Source: Octopus sinensis (taxonomy: Eukaryota). From it: a stretch of 18,983 nt of DNA. The position numbers and the translations under genes are program-made. The stretch spans positions 1-18,983 of the forward strand of contig NW_021824394.1 in the NCBI RefSeq assembly GCF_006345805.1, written 5' to 3'. Below are positions 1 to 18,983 of this stretch, piece after piece. Numbering within the stretch: position 1 is the first letter of the stretch; the number at the start of each line of letters is the position of its first letter. The notes under the pieces were generated by a model, which saw only the letters and a list, made by a program, of their open reading frames with translations, made no database searches and was not told where the DNA came from.

Positions 1-54
1 ATAAATATCAATATTTTTTTAAAATGAGGTCAATTCATGTGTTTAAAACGTTTC

Positions 55-79
55 AGGGCAGTGCCCCAGCATGGGCACA
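55..79 (+). mobile_element. Short remnant of the CR1/SINE-type 3' tail motif
   Basis: AGGGCAGTGCCCCAGCATGGGCACA resembles the GGYGGTGCYCCAGCATGGCCRCAG tail seen at ~8665, ~12775 and (reverse) 11115-11138. Confidence 0.4.
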
Positions 80-172
80 ATATATATATTTATATATATA
101 TATAGATACATACATATAAATATAAATCTGAAATGAAAAAACAAAACAATAAATTGAACAATGTATGCATGT

Positions 173-174
<2 letters not shown>

Positions 175-228
<54 letters not shown>

Positions 229-3200
229 TTAGCGTCCGTTTTCCATGCTAGCATGGGTTGGACGGTTCTACAGGGGTCTGTGAAGCTGGAAGGCTGCATC
301 AGGCCCAGTCAGATCTGGCAGTGTTTCTACAGCTGGATGCCCTTCCTAACGCCAACCACTCCGTGAGCGTAGTGGGTGCTTTTTACGTGCCACCCGCACA
401 GGTGCCAGACAGAGCTGGCAAACGGCCACGAACGGATGGTGCTTTTACGTGTCACCGGCACGGGGGCCAGGCGAGGCTGGCAACGGACACGAACGGATGG
501 TGCTTTTACGTGTCACCGACACGGGGGCCAGGCGAGGCTGGCAACGACCACGAACGGATGGTGCTTTTACGTGCCACCGACACGGGGGCCAGGCGAGGCT
601 GGCAACGGACACGAACGGATGGTGCTTTTACGTGCCACCGACACGGGGGCCAGACAGAGCTGGCAAACGGACACGAACGGATGGTGCTTTTACGTGCCAC
701 CGACACGGGGGCCAGGCGAGGCTGGCAACGACCACGAACGGATGGTGCTTTTACGTGTCACCGACACGGGGGCCAGGCGAGGCTGGCAACGGACACGAAC
801 GGATGGTGCTTTTACGTGCCACGGCACGGGGGCCAGACAGAGCTGGCAAACGGACACGAACGGATGGTGCTTTTACGTGCCACCGGCACGGGGGCCAGGC
901 GAGGCTGGCAACGGACACGAACGGATGGTGCTTTTACGTGCCACCGGCACGGGGGCCAGACAGAGCTGGCAAACGGACACGAACGGATGGTGCTTTTACG
1001 TGCCACCGGCACGGGGCCAGGCGAGGCTGGCAAACGGACACGAACGGATGGTGCTTTTACGTGCCACCGACACGGGGGCCAGACAGAGCTGGCAAACGGA
1101 CACGAACGGATGGTGCTTTTACGTGCCACCGGCACGGGGGCCAGGCGAGGCTGGCAACGGACACGAACGGATGGTGCTTTTACGTGCCACCGGCACGGGG
1201 GCCAGGCGAGGCTGGCAACGGACACGAACGGATGGTGCTTTTACGTGCCACCGGCACGGGGGCCAGGCGAGGCTGGCAACGGACACGAACGGATGGTGCT
1301 TTTACGTGCCACCGGCACGGGGGCCAGACAGAGCTGGCAAACGGACACGAACGGATGGTGCTTTTACGTGCCACCGCACGGGGGCCAGACAGAGCTGGCA
1401 AACGGACATGAACGGATGGTGCTTTTACGTGCCACCGGCACGGGGGCCAGGCGAGGCTGGCAACGGACACGAACGGATGGTGCTTTTACGTGCCACCGGC
1501 ACGGGGGCAGGCGAGGCTGGCAACGGACACGAACGGATGGTGCTTTTACGTGCCACCGGCACGGGGGCCAGGCGAGGCTGGCAACGGACACGAACGGATG
1601 GTGCTTTTACGTGCCACCGGCACGGGGGCCAGGCGAGGCTGGCAACGGCCACGAACGGATGGTGCTTTTACGTGCCACCGACACGGGGGCCAGGCGAGGC
1701 TGGCAACGGACACGAACGGATGGTGCTTTTACGTGTCACCGGCACGGGGGCCAGGCGAAGCTGGCAACGAACACGAACGGATGGTGCTTTTACGTGTCAC
1801 CGGCACGGGGGCCAGGCGAGGCTGGCAACGGCCACGAACGGATGGTGCTTTTACGTGTCACCGGCACGGGGGCCAGGCGAGGCTGGCAACGGCCACGAAC
1901 GGATGGTGCTTTTACGTGCCACCGACACGGGGGCCAGGCGAGGCTGGCAACGGACACGAACGGATGGTGCTTTTACGTGTCACCGGCACGGGGGCCAGGC
2001 GAAGCTGGCAACGAACACGAACGGATGGTGCTTTTACGTGTCACCGGCACGGGGGCCAGGCGAGGCTGGCAACGGCCACGAACGGATGGTGCTTTTAGTG
2101 TCACCGGCACGGGGGCCAGGCGAGGCTGGCAACGGCCACGAACGGATGGTGCTTTTACGTGCCACCGACAGGGGCCAGGCGAGGCTGGCAACGGACACGA
2201 ACGGATGGTGCTTTTACGTGTCACCGACACGGGGGCCAGGCGAGGCTGGCAACGACCACGAACGGATGGTGCTTTTACGTGCCACCGACACGGGGGCCAG
2301 GCGAGGCTGGCAACGGACACGAACGGATGGTGCTTTTATGTGCCACCGACACGGGGGCCAGACAGAGCTGGCAAACGGACACGAACGGATGGTGCTTTTA
2401 CGTGCCACCGACACGGGGGCCAGGCGAGGCTGGCAACGACCACGAACGGATGGTGCTTTTACGTGTCACCGACACGGGGGCCAGGCGAGGCTGGCAACGG
2501 ACACGAACGGATGGTGCTTTTACGTGCCACCGGCACGGGGGCCAGACAGAGCTGGCAAACGGACACGAACGGATGGTGCTTTTACGTGCCACCGGCACGG
2601 GGGCCAGGCGAGGCTGGCAACGGACACGAACGGATGGTGCTTTTACGTGCCACCGGCACGGGGGCCAGACAGAGCTGGCAAACGGACACGAACGGATGGT
2701 GCTTTTACGTGCCACCGGCACGGGGGCCAGGCGAGGCTGGCAAACGGACACGAAGGATGGTGCTTTTACGTGCCACCGACACGGGGGCCAGACAGAGCTG
2801 GCAAACGGACACGAACGGATGGTGCTTTTACGTGCCACCGCACGGGGGCCAGGCGAGGCTGGCAACGGACACGAACGGATGGTGCTTTTACGTGCCACCG
2901 GCACGGGGGCCAGGCGAGGTGGCAACGGACACGAACGGATGGTGCTTTTACGTGCCACCGGCACGGGGGCCAGGCGAGGCTGGCAACGGACACGAACGGA
3001 TGGTGCTTTTACGTGCCACCGGCACGGGGGCCAGACAGAGCTGGCAAACGGACACGAACGGATGGTGCTTTTACGTGCCACCGACACGGGGGCCAGACAG
3101 AGCTGGCAAACGGACACGAACGGATGGTGCTTTTACGTGCCACGGCACGGGGCCAGGCGAGGCTGGCAACGGACACGAACGGATGGTGCTTTTACGTGCC

Positions 3201-5090
3201 ACCGGCACGGGGGCCAGGCGAGGCTGGCAACGGACACGAACGGATGGTGCTTTTACGTGCCACCGGCACGGGGGCCAGGCGAGGCTGGCAACGGACACGA
3301 ACGGATGGTGCTTTTACGTGCCACGGCACGGGGGCCAGGCGAGGCTGGCAACGGCCACGAACGGATGGTGCTTTTACGTGCCACCGACACGGGGGCCAGG
3401 CGAGGCTGGCAACGGACACGAACGGATGGTGCTTTTACGTGTCACCGGCACGGGGGCCAGGCGAAGCTGGCAACGAACACGAACGGATGGTGCTTTTACG
3501 TGTCACCGGCACGGGGGCCAGGCGAGGCTGGCAACGGCCACGAACGGATGGTGCTTTTACGTGTCACCGGCACGGGGCCAGGCGAGGCTGGCAACGGCCA
3601 CGAACGGATGGTGCTTTTACGTGCCACCGACACGGGGGCCAGGCGAGGCTGGCAACGGACACGAACGGATGGTGCTTTTACGTGTCACCGGCACGGGGGC
3701 CAGGCGAGGCTGGCAACGGACACGAACGGATGGTGCTTTTACGTGTCACCGGCACGGGGGCCAGGCGAGGCTGGCAACGGCCACGAACGGATGGTGCTTT
3801 TACGTGTCACCGGCACGGGGGCCAGGCGAGGCTGGCAACGGACACGACGGATGGTGCTTTTATGTGTCACCGGCACGGGGGCCAGGCGAGGCTGGCAACG
3901 GACACGAACGGATGGTGCTTTTACGTGTCACCGGCACGGGGCCAGGCGAGGCTGGCAACGGACACGAACGGATGGTGCTTTTATGTGTCACCGGCACGGG
4001 GGCCAGGCGAGGCTGGCAACGGCCACGAACGGATGGTGCTTTTACGTGTCACCGGCACGGGGGCCAGGCGAGGCTGGCAACGGACACGAACGGATGGTGC
4101 TTTTATGTGTCACCGGCACGGGGGCCAGGCGAGGCTGGCAACGGACACGAACGGATGGTGCTTTTACGTGCCACCGACACGGGGGCCAGACAGAGCTGGC
4201 AAACGGACACGAACGGATGGTGCTTTTACGTGTCACCGGCACGGGGGCCAGGCGAGGCTGGCAACGGCCACGAACGGATGGTGCTTTTACGTGTCACCGG
4301 CACGGGGGCCAGGCGAGGCTGGCAACGGACACGAACGGATGGTGCTTTTACGTGCCACCGACACGGGGGCCAGGCGAGGCTGGCAACGAACACGAACGGA
4401 TGGTGCTTTTACGTGCCACTGACACGGGGGCCAATTAGAGCTGGCAAACGGACACGAACGGATGGTGCTTTTACGTGCCACCGACACGGGGGCCAGGCGA
4501 GGCTGGCAACGAACACGAACGGATGGTGCTTTTACATGCCACCAACACGGGGGCCAATTAGAGCTGGCAAACGGACACGAACGGATGGTGCTTTTACGTG
4601 CCACCGACACGGGGGCCAGGCGAGGCTGGCAACGGACACGAACGGATGGTGCTTTTACATGCCACCAACACGGGGGCCAGACAGAGCTGGCAAACGGCCA
4701 CGAAACGGATGGTGCTTTTACGTGTCACCGGCACGGGGGCCAGGCGAGGCTGGCAACGGACACGAACAGATGGTGCTTTTACGTGCCACTGACACGGGGG
4801 CCAGACAGAGCTGGCAAATGGACACGAACGGATGATGCTTTTACGTGCCACTGACACGGGGGCCAGGCGAGGCTGGCAACGGACACGAACGGATGGTGCT
4901 TTTACGTGCCACCGACACGGGGGCCAGACACAGCTGGCAAACGGCCATGAACGAATGGTGCTTTTCCGTGTCACCGGCATGGGGGCCAGGCGAGGCTGGC
5001 AACGGACACAAACGGATGGTGCTTTTATGTGCCACCGACACGGAGGCTAGACGGGGCGGCGCCGGCAACGACCACGATCGGATGGTTCGC
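175..5090 (-). mobile_element. 5'-truncated RTE-type LINE 3' UTR with hyper-expanded internal minisatellite and (GAT)18 tail
   Basis: 229-400 is the reverse complement of the 3' end of the RTE copy at 7470-7648 (GGCGTTAGGAAGGGCATCCAGCTGTAGAAAC...CCATGCTAGCATGG...GAT tail). (CAT)18 lies at 175-228. The terminal degenerate unit near 5050-5090 shares the GCCCCGTCT variant with the first unit of the 7159 array. No target-site duplication seen. Confidence 0.85.
405..5090. repeat. GC-rich tandem array of ~76 units of 61 bp (A type) and 62 bp (B type)
   Basis: A unit CCAGGCGAGGCTGGCAACGGACACGAACGGATGGTGCTTTTACGTGCCACCGGCACGGGGG (61 bp, 41/61 GC, 7 CpG); B unit starts CCAGACAGAGCTGGCAAACGG (62 bp). 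Unit starts at 405, 467, 528, 589, 650, 712, 773...; units degenerate towards 4370-5090. Confidence 0.97.
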
Positions 5091-5384
5091 TTAACCACTG
5101 ACTAACGATAGGACTGGATTTTTCCGATGGCTCCCTCTACATCAATTCCCTTGTAACAAGTGAGCCAAGAGACATATATCACCCCCACCCAACACCCCTC
5201 TCATGCACATCAGTCTTCTGCTACTGTTTGGGGTCCACATATAAGGGAGCTCATCAGATGTACATGTACCCCATACACTCGCTCCCACCAATGTCCATTT
5301 GATATTGACATCAACCATTCACTCTCATCATTTATTGAGATGCCTTATATCTCGCTCTTTCTCAATTCTAATCCCCTCCAGGGC

Positions 5385-5591
5385 TGGATCCAGAACAAGA
5401 AGGCACCAAGGACACTGTAAGACAGTTGATGTTAGGAAGGACAACACACCATAGAAACGAAACCCAAAATAAATATTAAAGGCTAAATGACATCCTGAGA
5501 CCCATCTGGGAGAGAACCGCTGACCCTCCAATCCATACAAATGGACAAAACAAATATGTACAGTGATGATGATGATGATGATGATGATGAT
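5385..5591 (+). mobile_element. Old, diverged RTE-type 3' end with (GAT)9 tail
   Basis: GTTGATGTTAGGAAGGACAACACACCATAGAAAC aligns to GTTGGCGTTAGGAAGGGCATCCAGCTGTAGAAAC; TCCAATCCATAC...ATGGA precedes (GAT)9 at 5565-5591, as in the 7580-7648 tail. Confidence 0.5.
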
Positions 5592-5933
5592 AATATATAA
5601 ATGAAGCTGAACACACACGCACACATATGAAACTAATAAAATGATGAAGATGGAGAGCCCCTTCCAATGTGGAAAGGGTCAGTTAAGTAACATTTACATA
5701 TTTCCCGAAATATAAAAAGATGACTTTTGCCTTTCTACATCGTAAGAAGCTGTCAGTCTCCAATGACAAGGCTTCTAGCAAACCACAAGGCTCTTCAGTA
5801 CATGTGTGTGTGTGTGTGTGACTATCTATGTATATGTAAGTATGCACACACACAAACACACACACGTCTGCATATATAGTTTTGTATGTATGTATGTATG
5901 TATGTATGTATGTATATATATATATATATATGT

Positions 5934-6085
5934 AGGCAGGAGTGCCTTTGTAGTAAGAAGCTTGCTTCCCAACCACATGGTTGTGGGTTCAGTCCCATTG
6001 CATGGCACCTTGGGCAAGTGTCTTTGGGCAGAGCAAAGACTTGTGAGTGGATTTAGTAGATGGAAACTGAAAGAAGCCCCTCGTA
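5934..6085 (+). mobile_element. tRNA-derived CORE-type SINE (5' part)
   Basis: B-box GGTTCAGTCCC (5986-5996), CORE-like GGCACCTTGGGCAAGTGTCTT, GGAAACTGAAAGAAGCCC; aligns to the copy at 12443-12604 with a short internal deletion; (TA)n on both sides. Confidence 0.8.
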
Positions 6086-6240
6086 TATATATATATATAT
6101 ATATATATTAAATAGTTTCTCAGTGTATTTGCTTTGTATGTCGTAATTAGTAATACTGTTAATTATAGCAGTTGCTTAATCACTAGACTGGAGGCAGACA
6201 CAATACACACACACACTAAATATATTATATATATATAGTT

Positions 6241-6995
6241 TTTGTATGTGGCAGATGCTCGGGAGCATTGACCTCCGAAAATCTGCAGAAAACAACTTCC
6301 GTCACTTTCCGGGGGGAAAAACTAGAAGTAGTTGATAGCTCCCGATATCTAGGTGACCAAGTCAGTAGTGGGGGTGGGTGCGCTGAAAGTGTAACTGCTA
6401 GAATAAGAATAGCCTGGGCAAAGTTTAGGGAGCTCTTACCTCTGCTGGTGACTAAAGGCCTCTCGCTCAGAGTAAAAGGCAGACTGTATGATGCATGTGT
6501 ACGAACAGCCATGCTACATGGCAGTGAAACATGGGCCGTGACTGCTGAGGACATGCGTAGCTCGTGAGGAATGAAGCCAGTATGCTCCGATGGATGTGTA
6601 ATGTCAGTGTACTTACTCGACAGAGCGTTAGTACCTTGAGAGAAATGTTGTACCTAAGAAGCATCAGTTGTGGTGTGCAAGAGAGACGATTGCGCTGGTA
6701 TGGTCATGTGGCGAGAATGGATAAAGATAGGTGTGTGAGAAAGTGCCAATCCCTAGCAGTTGAGGGAACCCGTGGAAGAGGTAGACCCAGGAAAACCTGG
6801 GACGAGGTGGTGAAGCACGACCTTCGGACGTTAGGTCTCGCCATGGAAATGACTAGAGACCGAGACCTATGGAAGTATGCCGTGCGTGAGAAGACCGGCA
6901 AGACTAGTGAAGCCATAACCGTGGCCCCTACCTGGGACGTAGTCAGTCCACCTGTGCATACCTTCCTTATTGTGGCACTTGAGAAGACCTGTTGA
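6241..6995 (+). pseudogene. Frameshifted RTE reverse-transcriptase ORF2 C-terminal fragment
   Basis: ORFs 6268-6567 and 6564-6995 are consecutive parts of one RTE protein. A 1-nt deletion near 6557 (CGT AGC TCG TGA instead of CGT AAG CTC GTG AGG AAT GAA) splits it. It starts FVCGRCSG; the RT catalytic core is absent. Confidence 0.85.
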
Positions 6996-7158
6996 GGCAA
7001 GTGAAAATCAAATCAAAACCAAATCAAAATAGATGTACGTCAATGGAATTTGTATCCTTTATGGTACCAGTGCCAGTGGCACATAAAAACCATCTGAACG
7101 TGACCGTAGCCAGTACCGCCCGCATCGACTGGCCTCCGTGCTGAGGGCACGTAACAAC

Positions 7159-7470
7159 CCATCCGAGCGTGGCCGTTCGCCAGCCCCGTCTGGCACCTGT
7201 GCCGGTGACACATAAGAAAACACCATCCGATCTTGGCCGTCTACCAGCCTCGTCTGGCACCTGTGTCGGTGGCACATAAGAAACACCATCCGAGCGTGGC
7301 CGTCTGTCAGCCTCGTCTGGCACCTGTGTCGGTGGCACATAAAAAACACTATCCGAGCGTGGCCGTCTGCCAGCCTCGTCTGGCACCTGTGTCGGTGGCA
7401 CATAAAAAACACCATCCGAGCGTGGCCGTCTGCCAGCCTCGTCTGGCACCTGTGTCGGTGGCACATAAAA
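7159..7470. repeat. Five ~63-bp tandem units in the RTE 3' UTR, homologous to the 405-5090 array
   Basis: Unit starts at 7159, 7223, 7286, 7349, 7412 (CCATCCGAGCGTGGCCGTCTGCCAGCCTCGTCTGGCACCTGTGTCGGTGGCACATAAAAAACA); roughly 80% identical by eye to the reverse complement of the large-array unit. Confidence 0.93.
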
Positions 7471-7656
7471 TCACCCACTACACTCTCGGAGTGGTTGGCG
7501 TTAGGAAGGGCATCCAGCTGTAGAAACACTGCCAGATCTGACTGCCTGGTGCAGCCTTCGGGCTTGCCAGACCCCAGTTGAACCGTCCAACCCATGCTAG
7601 CATGGAAAGCGGACGTTAAACGATGATGATGATGATTATGATGATGATATATATAT

Positions 7657-7705
<49 letters not shown>

Positions 7706-7896
7706 GGGTTTTCTTCATTTTCTTCTAACAAAAGGATCACAATTTTCTGATCAGCCAAAGGCATAATATCAAGAATGTGTGTGCATTTGCATGTGTAATG
7801 TGTGTATATGTATGCGTATGTGTGTGTGTAGAAATATATATATTATACATACACTTCCTTACATATATATATACATATATATATACATATATATAT

Positions 7897-7952
<56 letters not shown>

Positions 7953-7954
<2 letters not shown>

Positions 7955-8175
7955 TGGCGAGCTAGCAGAAACGTTAGCTCGCCACGCGATAAGTAGCCGT
8001 ATTTCGTCTGTCGTTACGTTCTGAGTTCATATTCCACCGAGGTCGACTTTGCCTTTCATCCTCTTGGGGTCGATAAATAAAGTACCAGTTTCGCACTGGG
8101 TTGATGTAATCGACTTAATCCCTTTGTCTGTCCTTGTTTGTCCCTCTATGTTTAGCCCCCTGTGGTAGTAAGAAA
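7953..8175 (+). mobile_element. tRNA-derived SINE (second family)
   Basis: tRNA-like head GGTGGCGAGCTAGCAGAAACG with B-box-like GAGTTCATATTCC (8023-8035), body GGTCGACTTTGCCTTTCATCC...GTCGATAAATAAAGTACCAGTT; recalled as a common octopus SINE; flanked by TA runs. Confidence 0.75.
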
Positions 8176-8187
8176 ATATATATATAG

Positions 8188-8507
8188 GGGCCGTGACTGC
8201 TGAGGATATGCGTCAGCTCGCAAGAAATGAAGCCAGTATGCTCTGATGGATGTGTAATGTCAGTGTTCATACTTGACAGAGTGTAAGTACCTTGAGAGAA
8301 AAGTTGGACCTAAGAAGCATCAGTTGTGGTGTGCAAGAGAGACATTTGCGCTGGTATGGGCATGTGGCGAGAATGGATGAAGATAGTTGTGTGAAAAAGT
8401 GCCACACCCTAGTGATTAAGGGAACCTGTGGAAGAGGTAGACCCATGAAAACCTGGGACGAGGTGGTGAAGCACGACCTTTGAACTTTAGGTCTCACCAA
8501 GGAAATG
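8188..8507 (+). mobile_element. RTE ORF2 fragment (second, more decayed copy)
   Basis: Directly alignable to 6533-6850 (GGGCCGTGACTGCTGAGGA...AAAACCTGGGACGAGGTGGTGAAGCACGACCTT); peptide ERHLRWYGHVARMDEDSCVKKC...GRGRP; in-frame stops. Confidence 0.9.
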
Positions 8508-8529
8508 GTGTGTGTATATCTGTGTCTAT

Positions 8530-8703
8530 GTCTGTTCCCCAATCCCAACAGTTGCCATCTGGTGAGTGTGTGTTTATGTCCCCATAAATTAATGGTTTGT
8601 TAAAAGAAACCCTTAGAATAAGTCCCAAGCTTTATAATATTAAGTCCTTAGGTTGATAAGTTGGGTGGTGCCCCAGCACGGCCACAGTCTTAAAAAAGTA
8701 AAG
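8530..8703 (+). mobile_element. Diverged 3' half of the CORE-type SINE
   Basis: GTGTGTTTATGTCCCC...AGAATAAGT...GGTGGTGCCCCAGCACGGCCACAGTC aligns to 12635-12815. Confidence 0.7.
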
Positions 8704-8939
8704 AATGATACATATACACAAAAATGTTTGTAGGCGGGTGTATATAAATGGGTGTATGAATGTATATGTTTAGAAATCCCAAAACTCAAATAGGTTTGAT
8801 GAATGCGAAGTAAAAACTGTCAATTCTTGTTATTTACACTTGGGTAAGCATTCTCATAAAACACTTTCTTAGAAAGCTTTTGTTGGATTCTCAACAAAAT
8901 AGCGTGGGAAAATTTTTACTAGAAAAGTATTACTGTGCA

Positions 8940-8972
<33 letters not shown>

Positions 8973-9179
8973 TTGTATATATATATATGTGTGTGTGTAT
9001 ATATATGTATGTATATGCATATATATATTTACTGTAACTGTGTGTGTGTATGTATTTATGTGTATATATATATGTTTAATTATATATGCATATATAAGGG
9101 TGTATACTTGTGTATATTTATACCCATGTACATGTGTGTTTGTGTATGTGTGTCTGTGCAAGTGTGTGGATGCACATTT

Positions 9180-9385
9180 TTAGTGTGTTGCACTCATGAT
9201 ACTAAGATTAAGGTTTCAATTCCTGGATTGGGTGATAGATTGTTTTCTTGAGCAACACTCTTCATTCCACTTCCCCCAATTTATTCGGCTAGTAAAATCA
9301 AGGAATCCAACGATGGCCCACCTTCTTCTTCATTGGGGGAAACATATACATGACAGAATAAGGGAAACTGGCCTTATGAGTCGAT
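9180..9385 (+). mobile_element. Degenerate tRNA/CORE-type SINE (third family)
   Basis: B-box-like GGTTTCAATTCC (~9212), CORE-like TTCTTGAGCAACACTCTTCAT, end GGGAAACTGGCCTTATGAGTC; assignment by recall only. Confidence 0.5.
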
Positions 9386-9487
9386 AATTTGTGCTGTGTG
9401 AGTCAATGACTCAGGAAAGTTTTGATACGGTTTCATAATACACGCACGCACAGATATATTATTCTTTTACACATTTCTTTACACATG

Positions 9488-9670
9488 TAGCTGTGGTCAT
9501 GCTGGAGCACCATCATGGTCTTGCAGCTTTTCTCAGTCGTTTGCCCCAGCTGTAATCTTGCGATGTCATCTTTGATTTTTTTATTGCCTCTGATAATTTT
9601 GTATCGTTAGCATAGCTGGTAACTATGGCTGTCTGAGGGGCCACTGGCATGTCTAAGAGGGCTACAAATA
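9488..9670 (-). mobile_element. Internally deleted CR1-type LINE fragment
   Basis: Minus-strand FVALLDMP...VTSYANDTK (degenerate YADD, 9603-9614) lies only ~90 bp from a CR1-type tail GGTGCTCCAGCATGACCACAGCT (9489-9511). Confidence 0.65.
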
Positions 9671-9695
9671 CATCCATACATATAGACATATATGT

Positions 9696-9954
9696 ATCAT
9701 CATCATCGTCGTCGTCTTTAACGTCTGCTTCCATGCTGGCATGAATTGGACAGTTTGACTGAGGGCTGGCAAACCAGAAGGCTGCACCAGGCCCCAATCT
9801 CATCTGGCAAAGTTTCTGCAGTTGGATACCATTCCTAATGCCAACCACTCCGAGAGTGAAGTCGGTGCTTTTTATGTGCCACAGGCATCAGGGCCACTGA
9901 GGCAGTGCTGGCATCAAGCATGCTTGAATGATGCATTTTACGTGCCACCGTCAC
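9696..9954 (-). mobile_element. Diverged RTE-type 3' end with only 1-2 minisatellite units
   Basis: CATCATCATCGTCGTCGTCTTTAACGTCTGCTTCCATGCTGGCATG...TTCCTAATGCCAACCACTCCG...GTGCTTTTTATGTGCCAC aligns to 175-450. Confidence 0.85.
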
Positions 9955-10085
9955 ATACGTATGTAGTATACATTTATGTATGTTTTTTGTATGTATATAA
10001 ATATATATATATATATCGGTAAATGTAATATGTGACAATTATTTGGTATATATTCAATATATATATGTATGCACTATATATATAT

Positions 10086-10131
10086 AACCCGTGCTAGCAC
10101 GGAAAACGGACGTTAAACGATGATGATGTTG

Positions 10132-10132
<1 letters not shown>
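10086..10132 (+). mobile_element. Extremely 5'-truncated RTE tail (~45 bp) in a TA microsatellite
   Basis: AACCCGTGCTAGCACGGAAAACGGACGTTAAACGATGATGATG matches 7589-7630. Confidence 0.85.
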
Positions 10133-10162
<30 letters not shown>

Positions 10163-10225
10163 TGTATTATTTTATATATATATATGTAAATATAAAACAT
10201 CCACATACGTATATATATATTTTAT

Positions 10226-10582
10226 TTCTGTAGTTTCAGCTCAGAGCTGCGGCCATGCTGGAGCGACTGCCGTTTTGCTACACTGTTATTACTGAGTGCC
10301 TCCTTCAATATGTGGCACTTGGTAAAGAATGGAGTTTGATGTAGCCACCCTTATTTACACCTCTTGACGTGAGGGACGTTCATCTGAGACTCTCAACAGG
10401 AAGAGGTCCAGCTTTGATTTAAAATCTCCTACATTTACTTTGTGCAAGTTCTTCAGGTTCTTTAAGAGGATATTAAAAAGCTGTGGGCCCCTGAAATCCA
10501 GACTGTTGCAGTAACTGGTCCCGAAGTGCGATGGCATTGCTGGAATCTTTGGCACTATGCAGTGTCGTCCTGTTCTGGCATT
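10226..10582 (-). mobile_element. CR1-type LINE 3' end (second copy)
   Basis: Peptide NARTGRHC..P...FRGPQLFNILLKNLKNLH...FKSKLDLFL..V.DE is homologous to the 11165-11731 ORF end; same tail (CAGCATGGCCGCAGCTCTGAGCTGAAAC on minus strand). Confidence 0.88.
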
Positions 10583-10796
10583 GGTGTAGCTTTCAATGAC
10601 AAAATTTATATATATGTATATATATTGTGTGTGTGCGTATTATTTATATATATATATATAAATAAACACACACACACACACCACACGTGTATTATGTATA
10701 TGTATACATATATATATATATATGTATTATTTATTTATATATATATACGCACACACATATGTATGTATGTATATATATGTGTGTGTATATATATAT

Positions 10797-11013
10797 TTCG
10801 ATTTTGGATTTGGTTTGCAAAATTCTTTATGTGAGTTCGTGTGTTGAAGCACATTCTGTTGTGTCTGGGAGAGTCATTCACTTTTAGTGCCTAATTATTT
10901 AACACACTCACCGGTAAAATTTCCACTTATTTCTTATTTTTATTTTCTAAAATTTTCCTTGCCTCTTGCAACCTTTTCAATAGTCTTGACGCAATCACTC
11001 TCCCCAGACACAA

Positions 11014-11016
<3 letters not shown>
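10797..11016. repeat. Unclassified interspersed-repeat-like segment with a 24-bp inverted copy
   Basis: CTGTTGTGTCTGGG-AGAGTCATT (10856-10878) vs the reverse complement of AATCACTCTCCCCAGACACAACAG (10993-11016); bounded by TA runs; family identity uncertain. Confidence 0.45.
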
Positions 11017-11052
<36 letters not shown>

Positions 11053-11068
11053 GTATATGTATATGTAT

Positions 11069-12087
11069 GATTGATTGATTGATTGATTGATTGATTCTAG
11101 TTTCAGCTTATGAGCTGTGGCCATGCTGGGGCACCGCCATTTGGTGTTGCTACTTGGTTTTACTTCACGAAAGCTTTTTAGCAACTGCCATTTGGTGCAT
11201 GAGAGAGTTCGATGCAGCTGCCCTCATCTGCACCTCCTGCCGTGAAGTTGGTTCATCTGGGACACCTGACAGGAAGAGATCCAGTTTCATTTTAAAGACA
11301 TCTGCATCCACCCCATGCAGGTCTCTCAGGTTCTTCGGGAGGATATTGAAGAGCTGTGGGCCATGGAAGCCCCGGCTATCACAGAATCTTGTCCTACATC
11401 TTGATGGCAAACTTGGAGTCCTAGGCACCATGCAGTGGCGCCCAGTTCTGGCATTTGCGTAACTCTCGATGCCAAAGTTTAGGACACGTCCCTCCAGGAT
11501 CTTCCAGATGTATATTATGGCATATCTTTCCCGCCTACGCTTCAAGGAATATAGTTTTAATCTCTTGAGTCTTTCCCAGTAGCTTACATTCTGCATAGAG
11601 GCTATCTTCTTCTTCGTGTAGCTGCGTTGGATCGCCTCGAGCTCTGTGATCAACTTGACACTGGATGGTGACCATAACTGAGAGCAGTAGTCAAAGTGGC
11701 TTAGGACAAGTGTCCTCCAGAGGACCATCATGGTTTTCTTGTTTTCTCTTGTTCTAAAGGTTCTGAGGATCCCCGGCCAGTCGTCTACATTTCATTGCCA
11801 ATTTAGCAACATGTACACGAAAGGTCGCGTCATCACTCATGTAAATACCTAGGTCACGCACTGATTGTGCCTCTGGGATTGCTATTCCTCCGGGTCCAGT
11901 GTATTCATTGGTATTGCATTTAGTTTTGCATGCTGATAGTATAAAGCTTGAAACTTTTCAGCATTGAACTGCATGCTATTCTTTTCAGCCCACTTGTTAT
12001 TTTGTCCAGCTCACATTGCAGGCGTTTAGTGTTCTCAGGGTTCTGTATTGCCTGTGAAACTTTGTATCATCTGCATAACTTGTGATC
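11069..12087 (-). mobile_element. 5'-truncated CR1-clade LINE with (AATC)7 tail
   Basis: YADD at 12066-12077, then WAEKNSMQFNAEKF, VRDLGIYM, LVLSHFDYCSQLWSP...LEAIQRSYTK...SYWERLKRLKLYSLKRRRER; tail GGCGGTGCCCCAGCATGGCCACAGC plus (GATT)7 at 11069-11096 on +. Confidence 0.92.
11165..12087 (-). pseudogene. CR1 reverse-transcriptase C-terminal half, frameshifted
   Basis: The intact 188-aa stretch 11165-11731 plus upstream RT motifs in different frames (shifts near 12060, 11995, 11890, 11770). Confidence 0.85.
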
Positions 12088-12270
12088 GTATATATATGTA
12101 TATATATGTATATGTATATATATGTATAATATGTATATGTATATATATGTATATATATGTATATATATGTAATGTATGTATTATATGTATATGTATGTTT
12201 ATGTATGTATATGTATATTATATTATTATATATATATATATATATATATGCACACACACGCACATGTATT
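12088..12270. repeat. Compound TA/TATG/CA microsatellite block (representative; similar blocks at 5803-5931, 7646-7701, 7860-7952, 8935-9170, 10600-10795, 13068-13176, 13530-13900, 14225-14700, 15290-15600, 17755-18010, 18340-18755)
   Basis: Direct reading: alternating purine/pyrimidine di- and tetranucleotide repeats; source of the [12 protein letters not shown] pseudo-ORFs. Confidence 0.97.
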
Positions 12271-12442
12271 TGATGGGTAGAGTGAGTGAAAGTACAGCAT
12301 GAACATTTCATCACTGTAAAGGAATTGTTTCTGCAGACCTTTGGGCAAAAGATGGATGCTCGTATGTTGTTTTCAATTGGAGTGTCCATCACACATACAT
12401 ATGTATATATATACACAAACACACACACACACATATATATAT

Positions 12443-12823
12443 GTAGAAGTGGCTGTTTGGTCAGTAGATTGCTTACCAACCACATGGTTCTGTGTTCAGT
12501 CCCACTGCGTGGCACCTTGGGCAAGTGTCTTCTGCTATAGCCTCGGGCCGACCAAAGCCTTGTGAGTGAATTTGGTAGACGGAAACTGGAAGAAGCCCGT
12601 CGTATATATGTATATATATGTATGTGTGTATATGTTTGTCCCCCTACCATTGCTTGACAACCAATGCTGGTGTGTTTATGTCCCTGTAACTTAGCGGTTC
12701 AGCAAAAGAGACTGATAGAATAAGTACTAGGCTTACAAAGAATAAGTCCTGGGGTCGATTTACTCTACTTGAAGGTGGTGCTCCAGCATGGCCGCAGTCA
12801 AAAGACTGAAACAAGTAAACGAG
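12443..12823 (+). mobile_element. Near full-length tRNA/CORE-type SINE with internal microsatellite and CR1-like 3' tail
   Basis: A-box TGGCTGTTTGG (12450-12460), B-box GTGTTCAGTCCC (12492-12503), CORE-like GGCACCTTGGGCAAGTGTCTT, TA/TG spacer, tail GGTGGTGCTCCAGCATGGCCGCAGTCAAAAGACTGAAAC. Confidence 0.85.
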
Positions 12824-13062
12824 AGAAAAGATATATATATACACACGTATATTAACAAATGTGTGAACATAACCATGTAAATATATTTACTTGTATGTGT
12901 ATGTTGATCTTTTACTGGATCCTGCAGTCATTAAATTGCGGCCAAGCAATTTTTTATATCTTTTATATTTTATATATTTGTATATTATATTATTTTTATT
13001 TGTCTTGGTTTATGTTTTACTCTGTTTGATTTGCCTAATAGTGCTTTTATCTCTAATTTAAT

Positions 13063-13102
<40 letters not shown>

Positions 13103-13103
13103 C

Positions 13104-13165
<62 letters not shown>

Positions 13166-13176
13166 TATATATATAT

Positions 13177-13805
13177 GTAGGTCCCGGGTTGATTTCGGGG
13201 TTAACCACAGTAAATAAGGTACTCAATACATAGCAGAGTAAAATTATTTATTATATAGAAGGAGCTTCTACGGACTAGAACTGTTTCATTCAAGAGAAAT
13301 CATCAGGAAGCTAGTTAACAAGAATTGTATTGGCATTTATACATTTAGGCAGGTTTAAAGGGGTGGTGGTGGGGGACTTTTTGGGGGTAGGCATAGCGCA
13401 AAAAATCATACTTGGGGGAGTGGTCAAGGAGTCAGTGGTAAATTAGATAAAAGAATAAATAAAAGAATAAAAAAATATATAGAAGAATAGAGTTTTAGGT
13501 AAATAAGGAGATTCTCACTTATACATATACACATATGTATATATATACACACACACACACACATATACATACACACATACATACACCACACACACATATA
13601 TATACATATACATAACACACACATATATATACATATATATATATATATTATATATATATATATATAACATATATATGCACATGTATATACACACACGACC
13701 ACACATACATATACACCACAAATATATACATACACACACATACACATACACACATACACACACATATCCACATACACACATGCACACACAAGTCCCTATA
13801 TACAC

Positions 13806-13855
<50 letters not shown>

Positions 13856-14222
13856 CATATGTGTACCTATACATACCTACACATACACACATACATACAA
13901 ATACAAACCCATTCCCTAATTTTAATTTTATTATTATCTTCATTTATTACTTTGTTATCTTTGACCGCGGGTCACAGGCATCTTGGCTACGACAGCAAGT
14001 CCATTTATCTTTCTACTTGAACACAAGCACTCACTCACGCACGCACACTCATTAGCACGCACACTCACTCATTCGTACACTCATACACATACACGCACGC
14101 ACGCGTTATATTCATACATACATACATCTACATACAATCACATTTATACACATACGTACGCGTACCTACAGATTCATGTCTACACGCTTAGAAGACTAGT
14201 CCGTACATATACACCAATAAAT
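13177..14222 (-). mobile_element. Hammerhead-bearing non-coding element, copy A1 (Penelope pLTR/retrozyme-like)
   Basis: Alignable to copies at 16160-16936, 16934-17754 and 18008-18983; on its minus strand TATAAA, then hammerhead, then AATAAA; ends ...CCCGGGACCTAC into (TA)n. No ORF. Confidence 0.75.
13263..13312 (-). ncRNA. Type I hammerhead ribozyme motif (copy A1, stem III weakened by 1-nt deletion)
   Basis: Minus strand AGCTTC-CTGATGA-TTTCTCTTGAAT-GAAAC-AGTTCTAGTCC-GTA-GAAGCT; stem I AGCTTC/GAAGCT; predicted cleavage between 13269 and 13268. Confidence 0.6.
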
Positions 14223-14256
14223 ATATATACACACATACATATACACCTACATACAA

Positions 14257-14310
<54 letters not shown>

Positions 14311-14456
14311 GTATATATACATACATACATACACCCATACATACATACATATATACACATACACATACCCACACATATACATATACATACACATACATAT
14401 ACATACATATATACACATACATATACATACATATACACATACATATATATATATAC

Positions 14457-14479
<23 letters not shown>

Positions 14480-14509
<30 letters not shown>

Positions 14510-14873
14510 CATACATGTACATACATACATATACATATATACACACACACACACATACATACACATATACATACACACACATACACATATACATGCGTAC
14601 CCATACACACACACACGCGCATCCATATATACTCATAAGTACACACATGCGTCAAAGTATACATATATCTATACATATGCTTACACATACACACACACAC
14701 ACGCACCTCCTTATGTTCATATACTTGCATGCATACTCAAAAAATAAATAATAAAATATATATACGTGCAGTTATACATATACATACATGCATACTCAAA
14801 AAATAAATAATAAATATTAAGTATATATACGTGCAGTTACCTATTATACAGACGGATACATACATATAAACTT

Positions 14874-14904
<31 letters not shown>

Positions 14905-15048
14905 ATATATATACATACTTACACATATGTACATATACATACACACATACATAACTCTACGTACCTACATATACATAAACACACGAGCGTACACGTATAT
15001 GTACATATACACATACACATACACACACATACATACATACATATACAT

Positions 15049-15082
<34 letters not shown>

Positions 15083-15364
15083 CAACAATTGAGGGTAAAG
15101 TTAATTAGTTATTAATCAATTTCACCAAGTATTCAGTATGTAAAAGGACCATTATTTTTGAGTAAACATTGTCTGAGAGAAATTTTCTTTAAGTAGTGGA
15201 AATGGCTAAAAAACTTTTTTGGCTGCTATTTCTAGAAAGTTCAGTATGTGGCAAAGTAATTTATTTTACTAAGCCCTAATTATATAATATTTTATATATA
15301 CATACATATATATACACACATACATATACACATACATATGCATACACACATATATATACATATA

Positions 15365-15398
<34 letters not shown>

Positions 15399-15544
15399 TA
15401 CATATATATATATTTTTACATATACATATTGTGTATATGTGTGTATGTATATGTATGTGTGTGTGTGTATATATATATGTGTGTGTGTGTATGTGTGTAT
15501 ATGTATATGTATGTATCATCATCATCATCATCATCATGTTTACG

Positions 15545-15593
<49 letters not shown>

Positions 15594-16158
15594 ATGTATA
15601 TGTATGTATGTATGTGTGTGTATGTGTATGTGTATATGTACATATACATGTACGCTCGTGTGTTTATGTATATGTAGGTACGTAGAGTTATGTATGTGTG
15701 TATGTATATGTACATATGTGTAAGTATGTATACATATATATATTATATATATATATATATATGTGTGTGTGTAAGTTTATATGTATGTATCCATCTGTAT
15801 AATAGGTAACTGCACGTATATATACTTAATATTTATTATTTATTTTTTGAGTATGCATGTATGTATATGAATAACTGCACGTATATATATTTTATTATTT
15901 ATTTTTTGAGTATGCATGTAAGTATATGAACATAAGGAGGCGCGTGTGTGTGTGTATGTGTAAGCATATGTATAGATATATGTATACTTTGACGCATGTG
16001 TGTACTTATGTGTATATATGGATGCGCCTGTGTGTGTGTGTATGGGTACGCATGTATATGTGTATGTGTGTGTATGTATATGTGTATGTATGTGTGTGTA
16101 TATATGTATATGTATGTATGTACATGTATGTATGTGTATATATATATATATATATATA
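14480..16158. repeat. Inverted repeat B/B' (~600-bp arms 14480-15080 and 15548-16158, ~470-bp spacer)
   Basis: Unique anchors are mirrored, e.g. CACGAGCGTAC vs GTACGCTCGTG and GCGTACCCATAC vs GTATGGGTACGC; the internal 60-bp tandem duplication at 14728/14788 is mirrored at ~15806-15920; only a handful of substitutions between arms. Confidence 0.9.
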
Positions 16159-16159
16159 T

Positions 16160-16586
16160 GTAGGTCCCGGGTTGATTCGGGGTTAACCACAGTAAATAAG
16201 GTACTCAATACATAGCAGAGTAAAATTAATTTATTATATAGAAGGAGCTTCTACAGGACTAGAACTGTTTCATTCAAGAGAAATCTTCAGGAAGCTAGTT
16301 AACAAGAATTGTATTGGCATTTATACATTTAGGCAGGTTTAAAGGGGTGGTGGTGGGGGACTTTTTGGGGGTAGGCAAAGCGCAAAATATCATACTTGGG
16401 GGAGTGGTCAAGGAGTCAATGGTAAATTAGATAAAAGAATGAATAAAAGAATAAAAGAATAAAAAAATAGAAAAATATATATAGAAGAATAGAGTTTTAG
16501 GTAAATAAGGAGATTCTCACTTATACCTATACACATATGTATACATATATATACACACACACACACATATACATACACTCATACAT

Positions 16587-16631
<45 letters not shown>

Positions 16632-16936
16632 TGTACCTATACATACGTACACATACACACATATATATATACATACAAATACAGACCCATTCCCTAATTT
16701 TAATTTTATTATCTTCATTTATTACTTTTGTTATCTTTGACCGCTGGTTACAAGCATCTTGGCTACGACAGCAAGTCCATTTATCTTTCTACTTGAAAAC
16801 AAGCACTCATTCACGCACGCACACTCACTCATTCGGACACTCATACACATACACGCACGCGTTATATTCATACATACATACATCCACATACGCGTACCCA
16901 CAGATTCATGTCTACACTCTTAGAAGGCTAGTCTAT
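16160..16936 (-). mobile_element. Hammerhead-bearing element, copy A2
   Basis: Starts GTAGGTCCCGGG exactly like A1; 16225-16936 is the near-perfect reverse complement of 17042-17754. Confidence 0.78.
16246..16296 (-). ncRNA. Type I hammerhead ribozyme motif (copy A2)
   Basis: Minus strand AGCTTC-CTGAAGA-TTTCTCTTGAAT-GAA-ACAG-TTCTAGTC-CTGT-A-GAAGCT; predicted cleavage between 16252 and 16251. Confidence 0.72.
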
Positions 16937-16961
16937 GTATTGTATGTAGGTGTATATGCAG

Positions 16962-17017
<56 letters not shown>

Positions 17018-17754
17018 ATATATATTTATTGGTGTATATGTATAGACTAGCCTTCTAAGAGTGTAGACATGAATCTGTGGGTACGCGTATGTGGATGTAT
17101 GTATGTATGAATATAACGCGTGCGTGTATGTGTATGAGTGTACGAATGAGTGAGTGTGCGTGCTAATGAGTGTGCGTGTGTGAATGAGTGCTTGTTTTCA
17201 AGTAGAAAGATAAATGGACTTGCTGTCGTAGCCAAGATGCTTGTGACCAGCGGTCAAAGATAACAAAAGTAATAAATGAAGATAATAAAATTAAAATTAG
17301 GGAATGGGTCTGTATTTGTATGTGTATATATATGTGTGTATGTGTACGTATGTATAGGTACACATATGTGTATATATATATATGTGTGTGTGTGTATGTA
17401 TGAGTGTATGTATATGTGTGTGTGTGTGTGTATATATGTATACATATGTGTATAGGTATAAGTGAGAATCTCCTTATTTACCTAAAACTCTATTCTTCTA
17501 TATATATTTTATTTTTTTATTCTTTTATTCTTTTATTCATTCTTTTATCTAATTTACCACTGACTCCTTGACCACTCCCCCAAGTATGATATTTTGCGCT
17601 TTGCCTACCCCCAAAAAGTCCCCCACCACCACCCCTTTAAACCTGCCTAAATGTATAAATGCCAATACAATTCTTGTTAACTAGCTTCCTGAAGATTTCT
17701 CTTGAATGAAACAGTTCTAGTCCTGTAGAAGCTCCTTCTATATAATAAATTAAT
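16934..17754 (+). mobile_element. Hammerhead-bearing element, copy A3 (3' end truncated just after AATAAA)
   Basis: TATAAA 17654-17659, hammerhead 17683-17733, AATAAA 17744-17749, then (TA)n; lacks the last ~65 bp present in A1/A2. Confidence 0.78.
17683..17733 (+). ncRNA. Type I hammerhead ribozyme motif (copy A3)
   Basis: Stem I AGCTTC 17683-17688 / GAAGCT 17728-17733; core CTGAAGA 17689-17695; short stem II TTC-TCTT-GAA with T.T closing mismatch; GAAA 17708-17711; stem III ACAG/CTGT; GUA triplet 17725-17727. Confidence 0.72.
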
Positions 17755-17925
17755 ATATATATATATATGTATATATATATGTATGTATATATATATATGT
17801 ATGTGTATATGTATGTATATGTATGTGTATGTATGCGCGTATATGTATGTATATGTATATGTGTGGGTATGTGTATGTGTATATATGTATGTATGTATGG
17901 GTGTATGTATGTATGTATATATACG

Positions 17926-17976
<51 letters not shown>

Positions 17977-18007
17977 TTGTATGTAGGTGTATATGTATGT
18001 GTGTATA

Positions 18008-18385
18008 TATATTTATTGGTGTATATGTATGGACTAGTCTTCTAAGCGTGTAGACATGAATCTGTAGGTACGCGTACGTATGTGTATAAATGTGAATGTA
18101 TGTAGATGTATGTATGTATGAATATAACGCGTGCGTGCGTGTATGTGTATGAGTGAGTGTGCGTGCTAATGAGTGTGCGTGCTAATGAGTGTGCGTGCGT
18201 GAGTGAGTGCTTGTGTTCAAGTAGAAAGATAAATGGACTTGCTGTCGTAGCCAAGATGCCTGTGACCCGTGGTCAAAGATAACAAAAGTAATAAATGAAG
18301 ATAATAATAAAATTAAAATTAGGGAATGGGTTTGTATTTGTATGTATATGTGTGTATGTGTAGGTATGTATAGGTACACATATGT

Positions 18386-18454
<69 letters not shown>

Positions 18455-18611
18455 GTGTATATAGGGACTTGTGTGTGCATGTGTGTATGGATATGTGTGT
18501 CTATGTGTGTATGTGTATGTGTGTGTATGTATATATTTTTGTGTGTATATGTATGTATGTATGTGTGTGTGTGTGTATATATACATGTGTGTGTGTATAT
18601 ATATGTGCATA

Positions 18612-18654
<43 letters not shown>

Positions 18655-18983
18655 GTGTGTGTATATGTATATGTATATATGTGTGTGTGTGTATGTATGT
18701 GTGTATGTATATGTGTGTGTGTGTGTGTGTATATATATACATATGTGTATATGTATAAGTGAGAATCTCCTTATTTACCTAAAACTCTATTCTTCTATAT
18801 ATTTTTTTTATTCTTTTATTTATTCTTTTATCTAATTTACCACTGACTCCTTGACCCCTCCCCAAAGTATGATATTTTTGCGCTATGTCTACCCCCAAAA
18901 AGTCCCCCACCCCACCCCTTTAAACCTGCCTAAATGTATAAATGCCAATACAATTCTTGTTAACTAGCTTCCTGATGATTTCT
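18008..18983 (+). mobile_element. Hammerhead-bearing element, copy A4 (runs off window)
   Basis: Reverse complement of A1; shares A1-specific variants (CTGATGA, GGACTAGTCTTCTAAGCG, CATAGCGC) that differ from A2/A3. Confidence 0.78.
18966..18983 (+). ncRNA. Partial hammerhead motif (copy A4), cut by window end
   Basis: AGCTTC-CTGATGA-TTTCT at 18966-18983; the rest is predicted by homology only. Confidence 0.5.

Follow-up and report, generated by a model that had tools for sequence, protein, structure and literature searches.

A non-coding repeat near the right end of an 18,983-nt stretch of Octopus sinensis DNA (NCBI RefSeq assembly GCF_006345805.1, contig NW_021824394.1, positions 1 to 18,983 of the forward strand; this whole stretch is hereafter the window) carries a motif that matches a type I hammerhead ribozyme in both sequence and secondary structure. 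The motif recurs in copies that are laid out locally as mirrored pairs, and in silico it is compatible with the formation of a dimer. Judging from the sequence, we consider the chances about even that this is a genuine but atypical type I hammerhead, either dependent on dimer formation or decayed, that resides in a non-autonomous retroelement derived from a retrozyme or from a Penelope element.

The exact 51-mer AGCTTCCTGAAGATTTCTCTTGAATGAAACAGTTCTAGTCCTGTAGAAGCT was found at 16246-16296 (-) and 17683-17733 (+), with 0 occurrences expected (200 shuffles). A unit alignment places a third version and the beginning of a fourth, such that the copies in the window are as follows.

17683..17733, plus strand: hammerhead-like motif of copy C, with N7 = A; exact 51-mer
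16246..16296, minus strand: hammerhead-like motif of copy B, identical to copy C letter for letter; exact 51-mer
13263..13312, minus strand: hammerhead-like motif of copy A, 50 nt, with N7 = U; from the unit alignment
18966..18983, plus strand: first 18 nt of copy D, with N7 = U, the rest being cut by the window end; from the unit alignment

A first-pass annotation of the window had described a hammerhead core, a 6-bp helix I, and a 4-bp helix III at these positions, and both our reading of the letters and a descriptor scan (see below) confirm all three. Copies A, B, and C have every core nucleotide in place (C3 U4 G5 A6 N7 G8 A9, G12 A13 A14, and the A15.1-U16.1 pair), H17 is an A within a GUA triplet, and the motif also holds a C15.2-G16.2 pair. 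In copy C, helix I is formed by 17683-17688 and 17728-17733, followed inward by the CUGAAGA core (17689-17695), helix II with its loop (17696-17707), GAA (17708-17710), helix III with its loop (17711-17726), and A17 (17727). The predicted scissile bond lies 3' of A17727, which the annotation had computed correctly, and the corresponding cleavage in copy B is predicted between 16252 and 16251 on the minus strand.

Helix I (AGCUUC/GAAGCU, 6 bp) is open-ended, and the three-helix topology is that of type I. Helix III (ACAG/CUGU, 4 bp) includes the A15.1-U16.1 and C15.2-G16.2 pairs and is capped by the 8-nt loop UUCUAGUC, which has a central palindrome, CUAG. Helix II (UUC/GAA, 3 bp, loop UCUU) is seated on a U10.1.U11.1 mismatch; this basal T.T (U.U) mismatch, entered as a caveat in the annotation, is indeed present and has a natural precedent in the axolotl HHR_Amex2, which has a U.U mismatch at the base of helix II and about 60,000 motifs (PMC7229834). 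Within the core, the two motif variants differ at N7 alone (A or U), the free position, as the annotation had stated for the core. Over the whole motif the copies differ elsewhere too, for in copy A the 3' strand of helix III is short of one T (CCGTA versus CCTGTA), and its helix III after this deletion reads A-U, C-G, an A.C mismatch, and G-C. TATAAA (17654-17659) and AATAAA (17744-17749) do lie on either side of copy C. These two hexamers had been listed in the annotation, and we rejected them as meaningful signals: they are weak evidence because both are common in this A/T-rich sequence (0.001 and 0.0017 per nt per strand), and together they imply an implausibly short transcript.

When folded in isolation, the 51-mer has a minimum free energy (MFE) structure close to the hammerhead fold, with ensemble probabilities of 0.93 for helix I and 0.37-0.53 for helix III. 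Two 51-mers are predicted to form a dimer of the double-hammerhead type at -27.0 kcal/mol, as compared to 2 x -8.5 (-17.0) kcal/mol for the monomers, and the extended helix III in this dimer is predicted at -12.8 versus -1.4 for the hairpin helix III; nearest-neighbor folding models of this kind ignore tertiary contacts in the core. Metazoan type I hammerheads commonly work as dimers through a palindromic loop III (PMC4209133), and HHR_Amex2 cleaves weakly as a monomer and better as a dimer (PMC7229834).

To gauge how often such a motif is expected by chance, we used our own type I descriptor, which consists of CUGANGA, a helix II of at least 3 bp (optionally with a basal mismatch), GAAA, a helix III of at least 3 bp that starts with A-U, H17, and a helix I of at least 5 bp. 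Scanning the whole window with this descriptor returned these copies only. Under a null model of independent and identically distributed (i.i.d.) bases with the composition of the element, and for a genome of 2.7 Gb, the expected numbers of matches are as follows.

Relaxed descriptor: 1.2e-3 per window, about 170 per 2.7-Gb genome
Observed helix lengths (I = 6, III = 4): 1.6e-4 per window, about 22 per genome
The same plus C15.2-G16.2: 7e-6 per window, about 1 per genome
The same plus the central palindrome in loop III: 0 in 3 million seeded trials, less than 1 per genome

The last two requirements (C15.2-G16.2 and the loop III palindrome) are post hoc choices that were made with the sequence known, and the i.i.d. 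null understates real DNA that is rich in hairpins. The motif is improbable within a single window. It is nevertheless within reach of a scan over very many windows of a gigabase genome, because about 170 (relaxed) or about 22 (observed helices) are expected per genome.

The motif sits in a repeat unit for which the following features were delimited.

13177..14205, minus strand: repeat unit A, with (TA)n on either flank
16160..16945, minus strand: repeat unit B, whose 3' tail is complete and whose internal microsatellite is shorter
17040..17757, plus strand: repeat unit C, mirror of B, 99.2-99.6% identical in the unique blocks
18020..18983, plus strand: repeat unit D, mirror of A, 97-98.6% identical; runs off the window
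16946..17039, no strand: center of the large palindrome, (TA)n/(TG)n, from the inverted-repeat list
14206..16159, no strand: spacer between A and B, with microsatellites and an inner diverged inverted repeat; no counterpart between C and D

In hammerhead orientation, each unit opens on its 5' side with some 300 nt of unique sequence, continues through an internal TG/TA microsatellite into a 3' block of some 230 nt, and closes with the motif and a 106-nt tail. The tail is intact in A (where it ends in ...CCCGGGACCTAC) and in B, and in C it is stopped by (TA)n 21 nt past the motif; all units are bounded by (TA)n. No further copies of the unit were found in window positions 1-13176. The layout is A(-) ... 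B(-), C(+) D(+), around a palindrome centered in (TA)n near 16990. In the four-unit alignment, shared indels pair A with D and B with C, and substitution identity in the unique blocks, which is highest within these pairs, is 93-97.7% between types. Because of these shared indels and the inverted-repeat list, the copies are two unit types, each mirrored, and not four independent insertions; the four positions reported in the annotation stand, as those of non-independent copies. Originally there were probably two direct units, lying about 3 kb from each other, which an inverted duplication mirrored afterwards. Spacing within the direct pairs is 1283 bp from C to D and 2984 bp from B to A (minus strand), of which D is incomplete at the window end and A has a deletion. 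The left arm alone has an extra 1.76 kb (14488-16245), which holds microsatellites, the whole 3' tail of B, and an older inverted repeat. The arms of this inner repeat (14660-15082 and 15564-15986) are 423 nt long, 82% complementary, and 481 nt apart. Each arm has an internal duplication of about 60 bp (GCATGCATACTCAAAAAATAAATAATAAA...ACGTGCAGTTA), and the repeat may be a fold-back element or a miniature inverted-repeat transposable element.

The motif thus lies within a non-coding unit that has about 0.7 kb of unique sequence and internal microsatellites, some 106 nt short of the 3' end. If it is a working ribozyme, self-cleavage of a read-through transcript across two direct units, on the 3' side of the GUA triplet (for copy C, after A17727), would release a unit-length RNA with a 5'-OH and a 2',3'-cyclic phosphate end. 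Host tRNA ligase could then circularize this RNA, and a Penelope-type reverse transcriptase (RT), supplied in trans, could copy the circle. A double hammerhead with an extended helix III would be a likelier route to cleavage than a lone monomer, because helix II is weak and loop III carries the central palindrome CUAG. Catalysis, transcription, circularization, and mobilization are steps that we infer from the sequence, as are the status of the element as a genome-wide family and conservation across that family.

Several known systems resemble the octopod element, among them the metazoan non-LTR (lacking long terminal repeats) retrozymes of coral, mussel, and axolotl (Cervera and de la Pena, 2020; PMC7229834). 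These are likewise non-coding, low-GC repeats with one type I hammerhead per unit and units in direct orientation. Their mussel representatives also do without conserved contacts between loops 1 and 2, and the axolotl HHR_Amex2 shares the U.U mismatch. Dimer-dependent cleavage is plausible in both groups. The differences are that known retrozyme units measure 150-450 bp, with a maximum of 972 bp in Li et al. (2026), and form clean head-to-tail arrays, whereas the octopod spacing is 1283 and 2984 bp with a mirrored layout; and that the octopod helix II is shorter and weaker. The preprint of Li et al. (2026) makes the case that Penelope pseudo-LTRs gave rise to animal retrozymes, for which it gives consensus lengths of 51-972 bp.

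The minimal hammerheads in the pseudo-LTRs of Penelope-like elements (PLEs; Cervera and de la Pena, 2014; PMC4209133) are also of type I, also lie near the 3' end of a direct repeat, and also occur in tandem and inverted copies with (TA)n flanks; as monomers, both would be expected to have low activity. The PLEs of Cercyon have a gap of about 3 kb between two hammerheads (PMC4209133), similar to the B-to-A spacing. PLE insertions are typically tandem and inverted and prefer (TA)n or other microsatellites (PMC8557442), and the octopod units, which run minus, minus and then plus, plus with (TA)n bounds, loosely follow the same pattern. This match is weak evidence for a Penelope origin, because the region is rich in microsatellites and the symmetry fits a single inverted duplication. 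PLEs differ in carrying an RT/GIY-YIG open reading frame (ORF), of which there is none between or near the octopod copies. Another non-autonomous, non-coding repeat with a type I hammerhead is the SINE-like (short interspersed nuclear element) Sm-alpha element of Schistosoma, whose hammerheads, reportedly described by Ferbeyre et al. in 1998, are said to have been proven to cleave. Sm-alpha is dispersed, whereas the octopod element is known at one locus, and Sm-alpha hammerheads differ in having a G-C-rich helix II and loop-loop contacts. As for the Rfam hammerhead clan, of which Hammerhead_1 (RF00163) is a member, the core consensus and the type I topology are the same, yet the octopod motif does not reach E = 10 against any model of the clan in searches of 65-131 nt.

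Several observations weigh against a functional hammerhead, some of which concern helix II and the folding of the motif in its context. Positions 10.1 and 11.1, which normally form a G-C pair at the foot of a stable helix II, are a U.U mismatch here, and the helix above it has just three pairs (two A-U and one C-G). Base-pair probabilities for helix II are only 0.06-0.15 in the isolated 51-mer, which is no more stable than its shuffles (z = 0.17), and a recognizable loop-loop tertiary contact is absent from the motif. With 20 nt of flank, the probabilities of helices I and III drop to about 0.01, and an alternative fold prevails, composed of a rod (ACUAG/CUAGU, CUG/CAG, and UUC/GAA at 17678-17722) and a hairpin (UAGAAG-CUC-CUUCUA). 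The flanked MFE is -12.2 kcal/mol for the alternative and -7.8 kcal/mol for the hammerhead fold, a gap of about 4.4 (4-6) kcal/mol, and transcription need not have reached the 3' strand of helix III for the rod to form. The architecture is also the reverse of that in PLE minimal hammerheads, in which helix II has 6-8 bp, helix I 4-5 bp, and helix III is absent or has 1-2 bp (PMC4209133); the octopod motif has 3 bp in helix II, 6 bp in helix I, and a 4-bp helix III capped by an 8-nt loop.

Database searches and the local copies add to this evidence. At gathering score, no Rfam hammerhead family matched the window. With the cutoff relaxed to E <= 10, none matched when 131 nt or 65 nt around the motif were searched, and none was present over the 18983 nt among the best 150 of 282 matches. 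The scan with hammerhead covariance models that the annotation had put forward as a check was accordingly negative, even on 65 nt. Of the linkage to Penelope RT/GIY-YIG ORFs, which it had proposed to look for genome-wide, the window offers no example: neither a Penelope RT nor a GIY-YIG ORF was found anywhere in it. No family member was found elsewhere in the protein, metagenome DNA, and viral-contig collections searched. Specifically, nothing was returned by a protein-database search with concatenated stop-free six-frame peptides (from the 3' block and from the 5' block of the unit), by metagenome DNA scans with an upstream flank 22-mer and a degenerate hammerhead pattern, by a viral-contig scan, or by a literature search on the motif string. 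A clean tandem array is lacking, with microsatellites and an unrelated 1.3-kb inverted repeat separating the units. The copies are 93-99.6% identical, the motif is conserved no better than its flanks, and the helix III deletion of copy A is uncompensated. Because the motif is conserved like its flanks and this lone indel is uncompensated, the local copies are uninformative on selection. At such identity they also hold no covariation signal, and we rejected a covariation analysis on the four copies as too similar and non-independent. Taken as a whole, the hammerhead interpretation in the annotation is upheld by sequence, secondary structure, and rarity per window, and is weakened by the silence of Rfam, the marginal helix II, and the alternative fold that wins in context.

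The stretch 17678-17743 and its mirror copies form an imperfect palindrome (ACTAG-CTTC-CTG-AAGAT-TTC-TCTT-GAA-TGAAA-CAG-TT-CTAGT) that adjoins a hairpin (TAGAAG-CTC-CTTCTA). The mutually exclusive folds modeled here could represent a conformational switch, or else simply the absence of a ribozyme.

Nearly as likely as a genuine hammerhead is a chance look-alike in locally duplicated non-coding DNA, generated by microsatellite-mediated and inverted duplication and involving no RNA cleavage. Such a look-alike may have originated from an A/T-rich imperfect palindrome next to a hairpin, with CUGANGA and GAAA at the right spacing. A 2.7-Gb genome of the same composition is expected to hold about 170 (relaxed) or about 22 (observed helices) of these motifs, a number that the i.i.d. 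null underestimates for hairpin-rich DNA. The silent Rfam models, the marginal helix II with its dominant alternative fold, the copies that have no sign of selection and of which one has a deletion in helix III, and the absence of Penelope genes nearby are all consistent with chance, and one local duplication history accounts for all copies. Against this explanation, the expectation for a single window is merely 1e-3 to 1e-4, and the U.U mismatch is precedented in nature (PMC7229834). Moreover, the C15.2-G16.2 pair, the GUA triplet, the loop III palindrome, and the 6-bp helix I are undemanded features that natural type I hammerheads favor, and with all of them required, about one motif per genome, or fewer, is expected.

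Two further explanations concern the copies and the strand. The inverted half may be an assembly artifact, i.e., a fold-back or chimeric long read near the contig end, in which case there would be two direct units rather than four copies; this is compatible with a hammerhead and with chance alike. Such an artifact is conceivable because the window has an odd length (18983 nt) and the right arm reaches straight to its end, and it would suit arms that mirror each other about a (TA)n center near 16990 (A with D, B with C) and differ mostly by microsatellite length and scattered substitutions. We consider it unlikely, given that the arms differ by 0.4-3% substitutions and by the left-only 1.76-kb segment, which is beyond usual polishing noise, and that the older 82%-complementary inverted repeat in the left arm demonstrates that real palindromes arise in this region. 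Far less probable still is transcription from the opposite strand, as a SINE-like or some other retroposon in which the hammerhead-like motif would be antisense and irrelevant. Read in this direction, the element would show a GGGTTGATTCGGGG hairpin near its start and a (AAAAGAATA)-type A-rich repeat further on; the plus strand of units A and B starts with GTAGGTCCCGGGTTGATT(T)CGGGG and has GATAAAAGAATAAATAAAAGAATAAAAAAA about 250 nt later, and octopod genomes are rich in SINEs (11.6% in O. vulgaris; PMC13282606). However, neither a tRNA or tRNA-like gene, a SINE head, nor an Rfam match was found in the unit, the unit is dissimilar to the SINE-like sequences elsewhere in the window, and the A-rich stretch is internal, with the unit extending about 600 bp past it.

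Several other repeats and coding remnants are present in the window. The RT fragments are of the long interspersed nuclear element (LINE) type and none is Penelope-like. Among these fragments (6268-6995 (+), 8215-8548, 9513-9848 (-), and 11165-12100 (-)) are C-terminal regions that bear an RLRWYGHV-like motif and YADDTK-like motifs, and 6559-6851 and 8215-8507 are direct copies with 90% identity. A combined query of 6268-6995 (+) and 11165-11731 (-) had its best named relatives in Argonauta hians and Octopus bimaculoides. Homologs of the RT-like ORFs bear RVT_1 and PHD domains, without GIY-YIG. Eight ORFs of the window, RT-like and others, yielded no Pfam domain, and an exact-product look-up of four window ORFs returned no record.

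A 61-bp satellite occupies 375-5047 (76.5 copies, 93% match, 62% G+C) and gives rise, in several frames, to spurious ORFs, the longest of which has 1525 aa. A 63-bp array at 7159-7470 (4.9 copies) is a diverged, inverted relative of this satellite, with an alignment score of 39 of 61 in reverse complement and 9 in forward orientation. Runs of (ATC)18.7 at 173-228 and (CAT)n at 15513-15540 produce poly-His or poly-Asp strings in spurious ORFs. The segment 12440-12830 appears to resemble the abundant octopus SINE (...GGTGCTCCAGCATGGCCGCAGTCAAAAGACTGAAACAAGTAAA...); ARAGORN found no tRNA head for it, and a 132-nt piece is common to 5893-6024 and 12400-12531 (77% identity). Rfam microRNA models (MIR4208, mir-3149, mir-297, mir-5014, and others) matched with E down to 1e-11. 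These matches sit on TG/TA microsatellites and the palindrome center (16878-17099, 15376-15460, and many other stretches), far below gathering score, and we rejected them as low-complexity artifacts.

Metazoans at large, molluscs included, are already known to carry type I hammerheads, retrozymes, and Penelope hammerheads, so the gain from a genuine octopod hammerhead would be incremental. We found no report of hammerheads in cephalopods in the literature searched. In its most specific form, which we regard as doubtful, the element would represent an undescribed cephalopod retrozyme family. Its microsatellite-containing units would measure 1.3-3 kb and its 3-bp helix II would rest on U.U; it would act only as a double hammerhead through the palindromic loop III, the rod would keep monomeric or circular RNA uncleaved, and octopus Penelope elements would mobilize it. 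Should the motif instead be due to chance, it would indicate that relaxed hammerhead descriptors give tens to hundreds of false hits in an A/T-rich genome of gigabase size. If the hammerhead is genuine, it would be a natural example with a near-minimal helix II, and would help to bound how far this helix can be relaxed in ribozymes that act as dimers. About 30 recently active Penelope families have been annotated in Octopus vulgaris (PMC13282606), and octopus families of this kind could mobilize such elements. If the motif cleaves, hammerhead-bearing non-autonomous retroelements would be extended to cephalopods.

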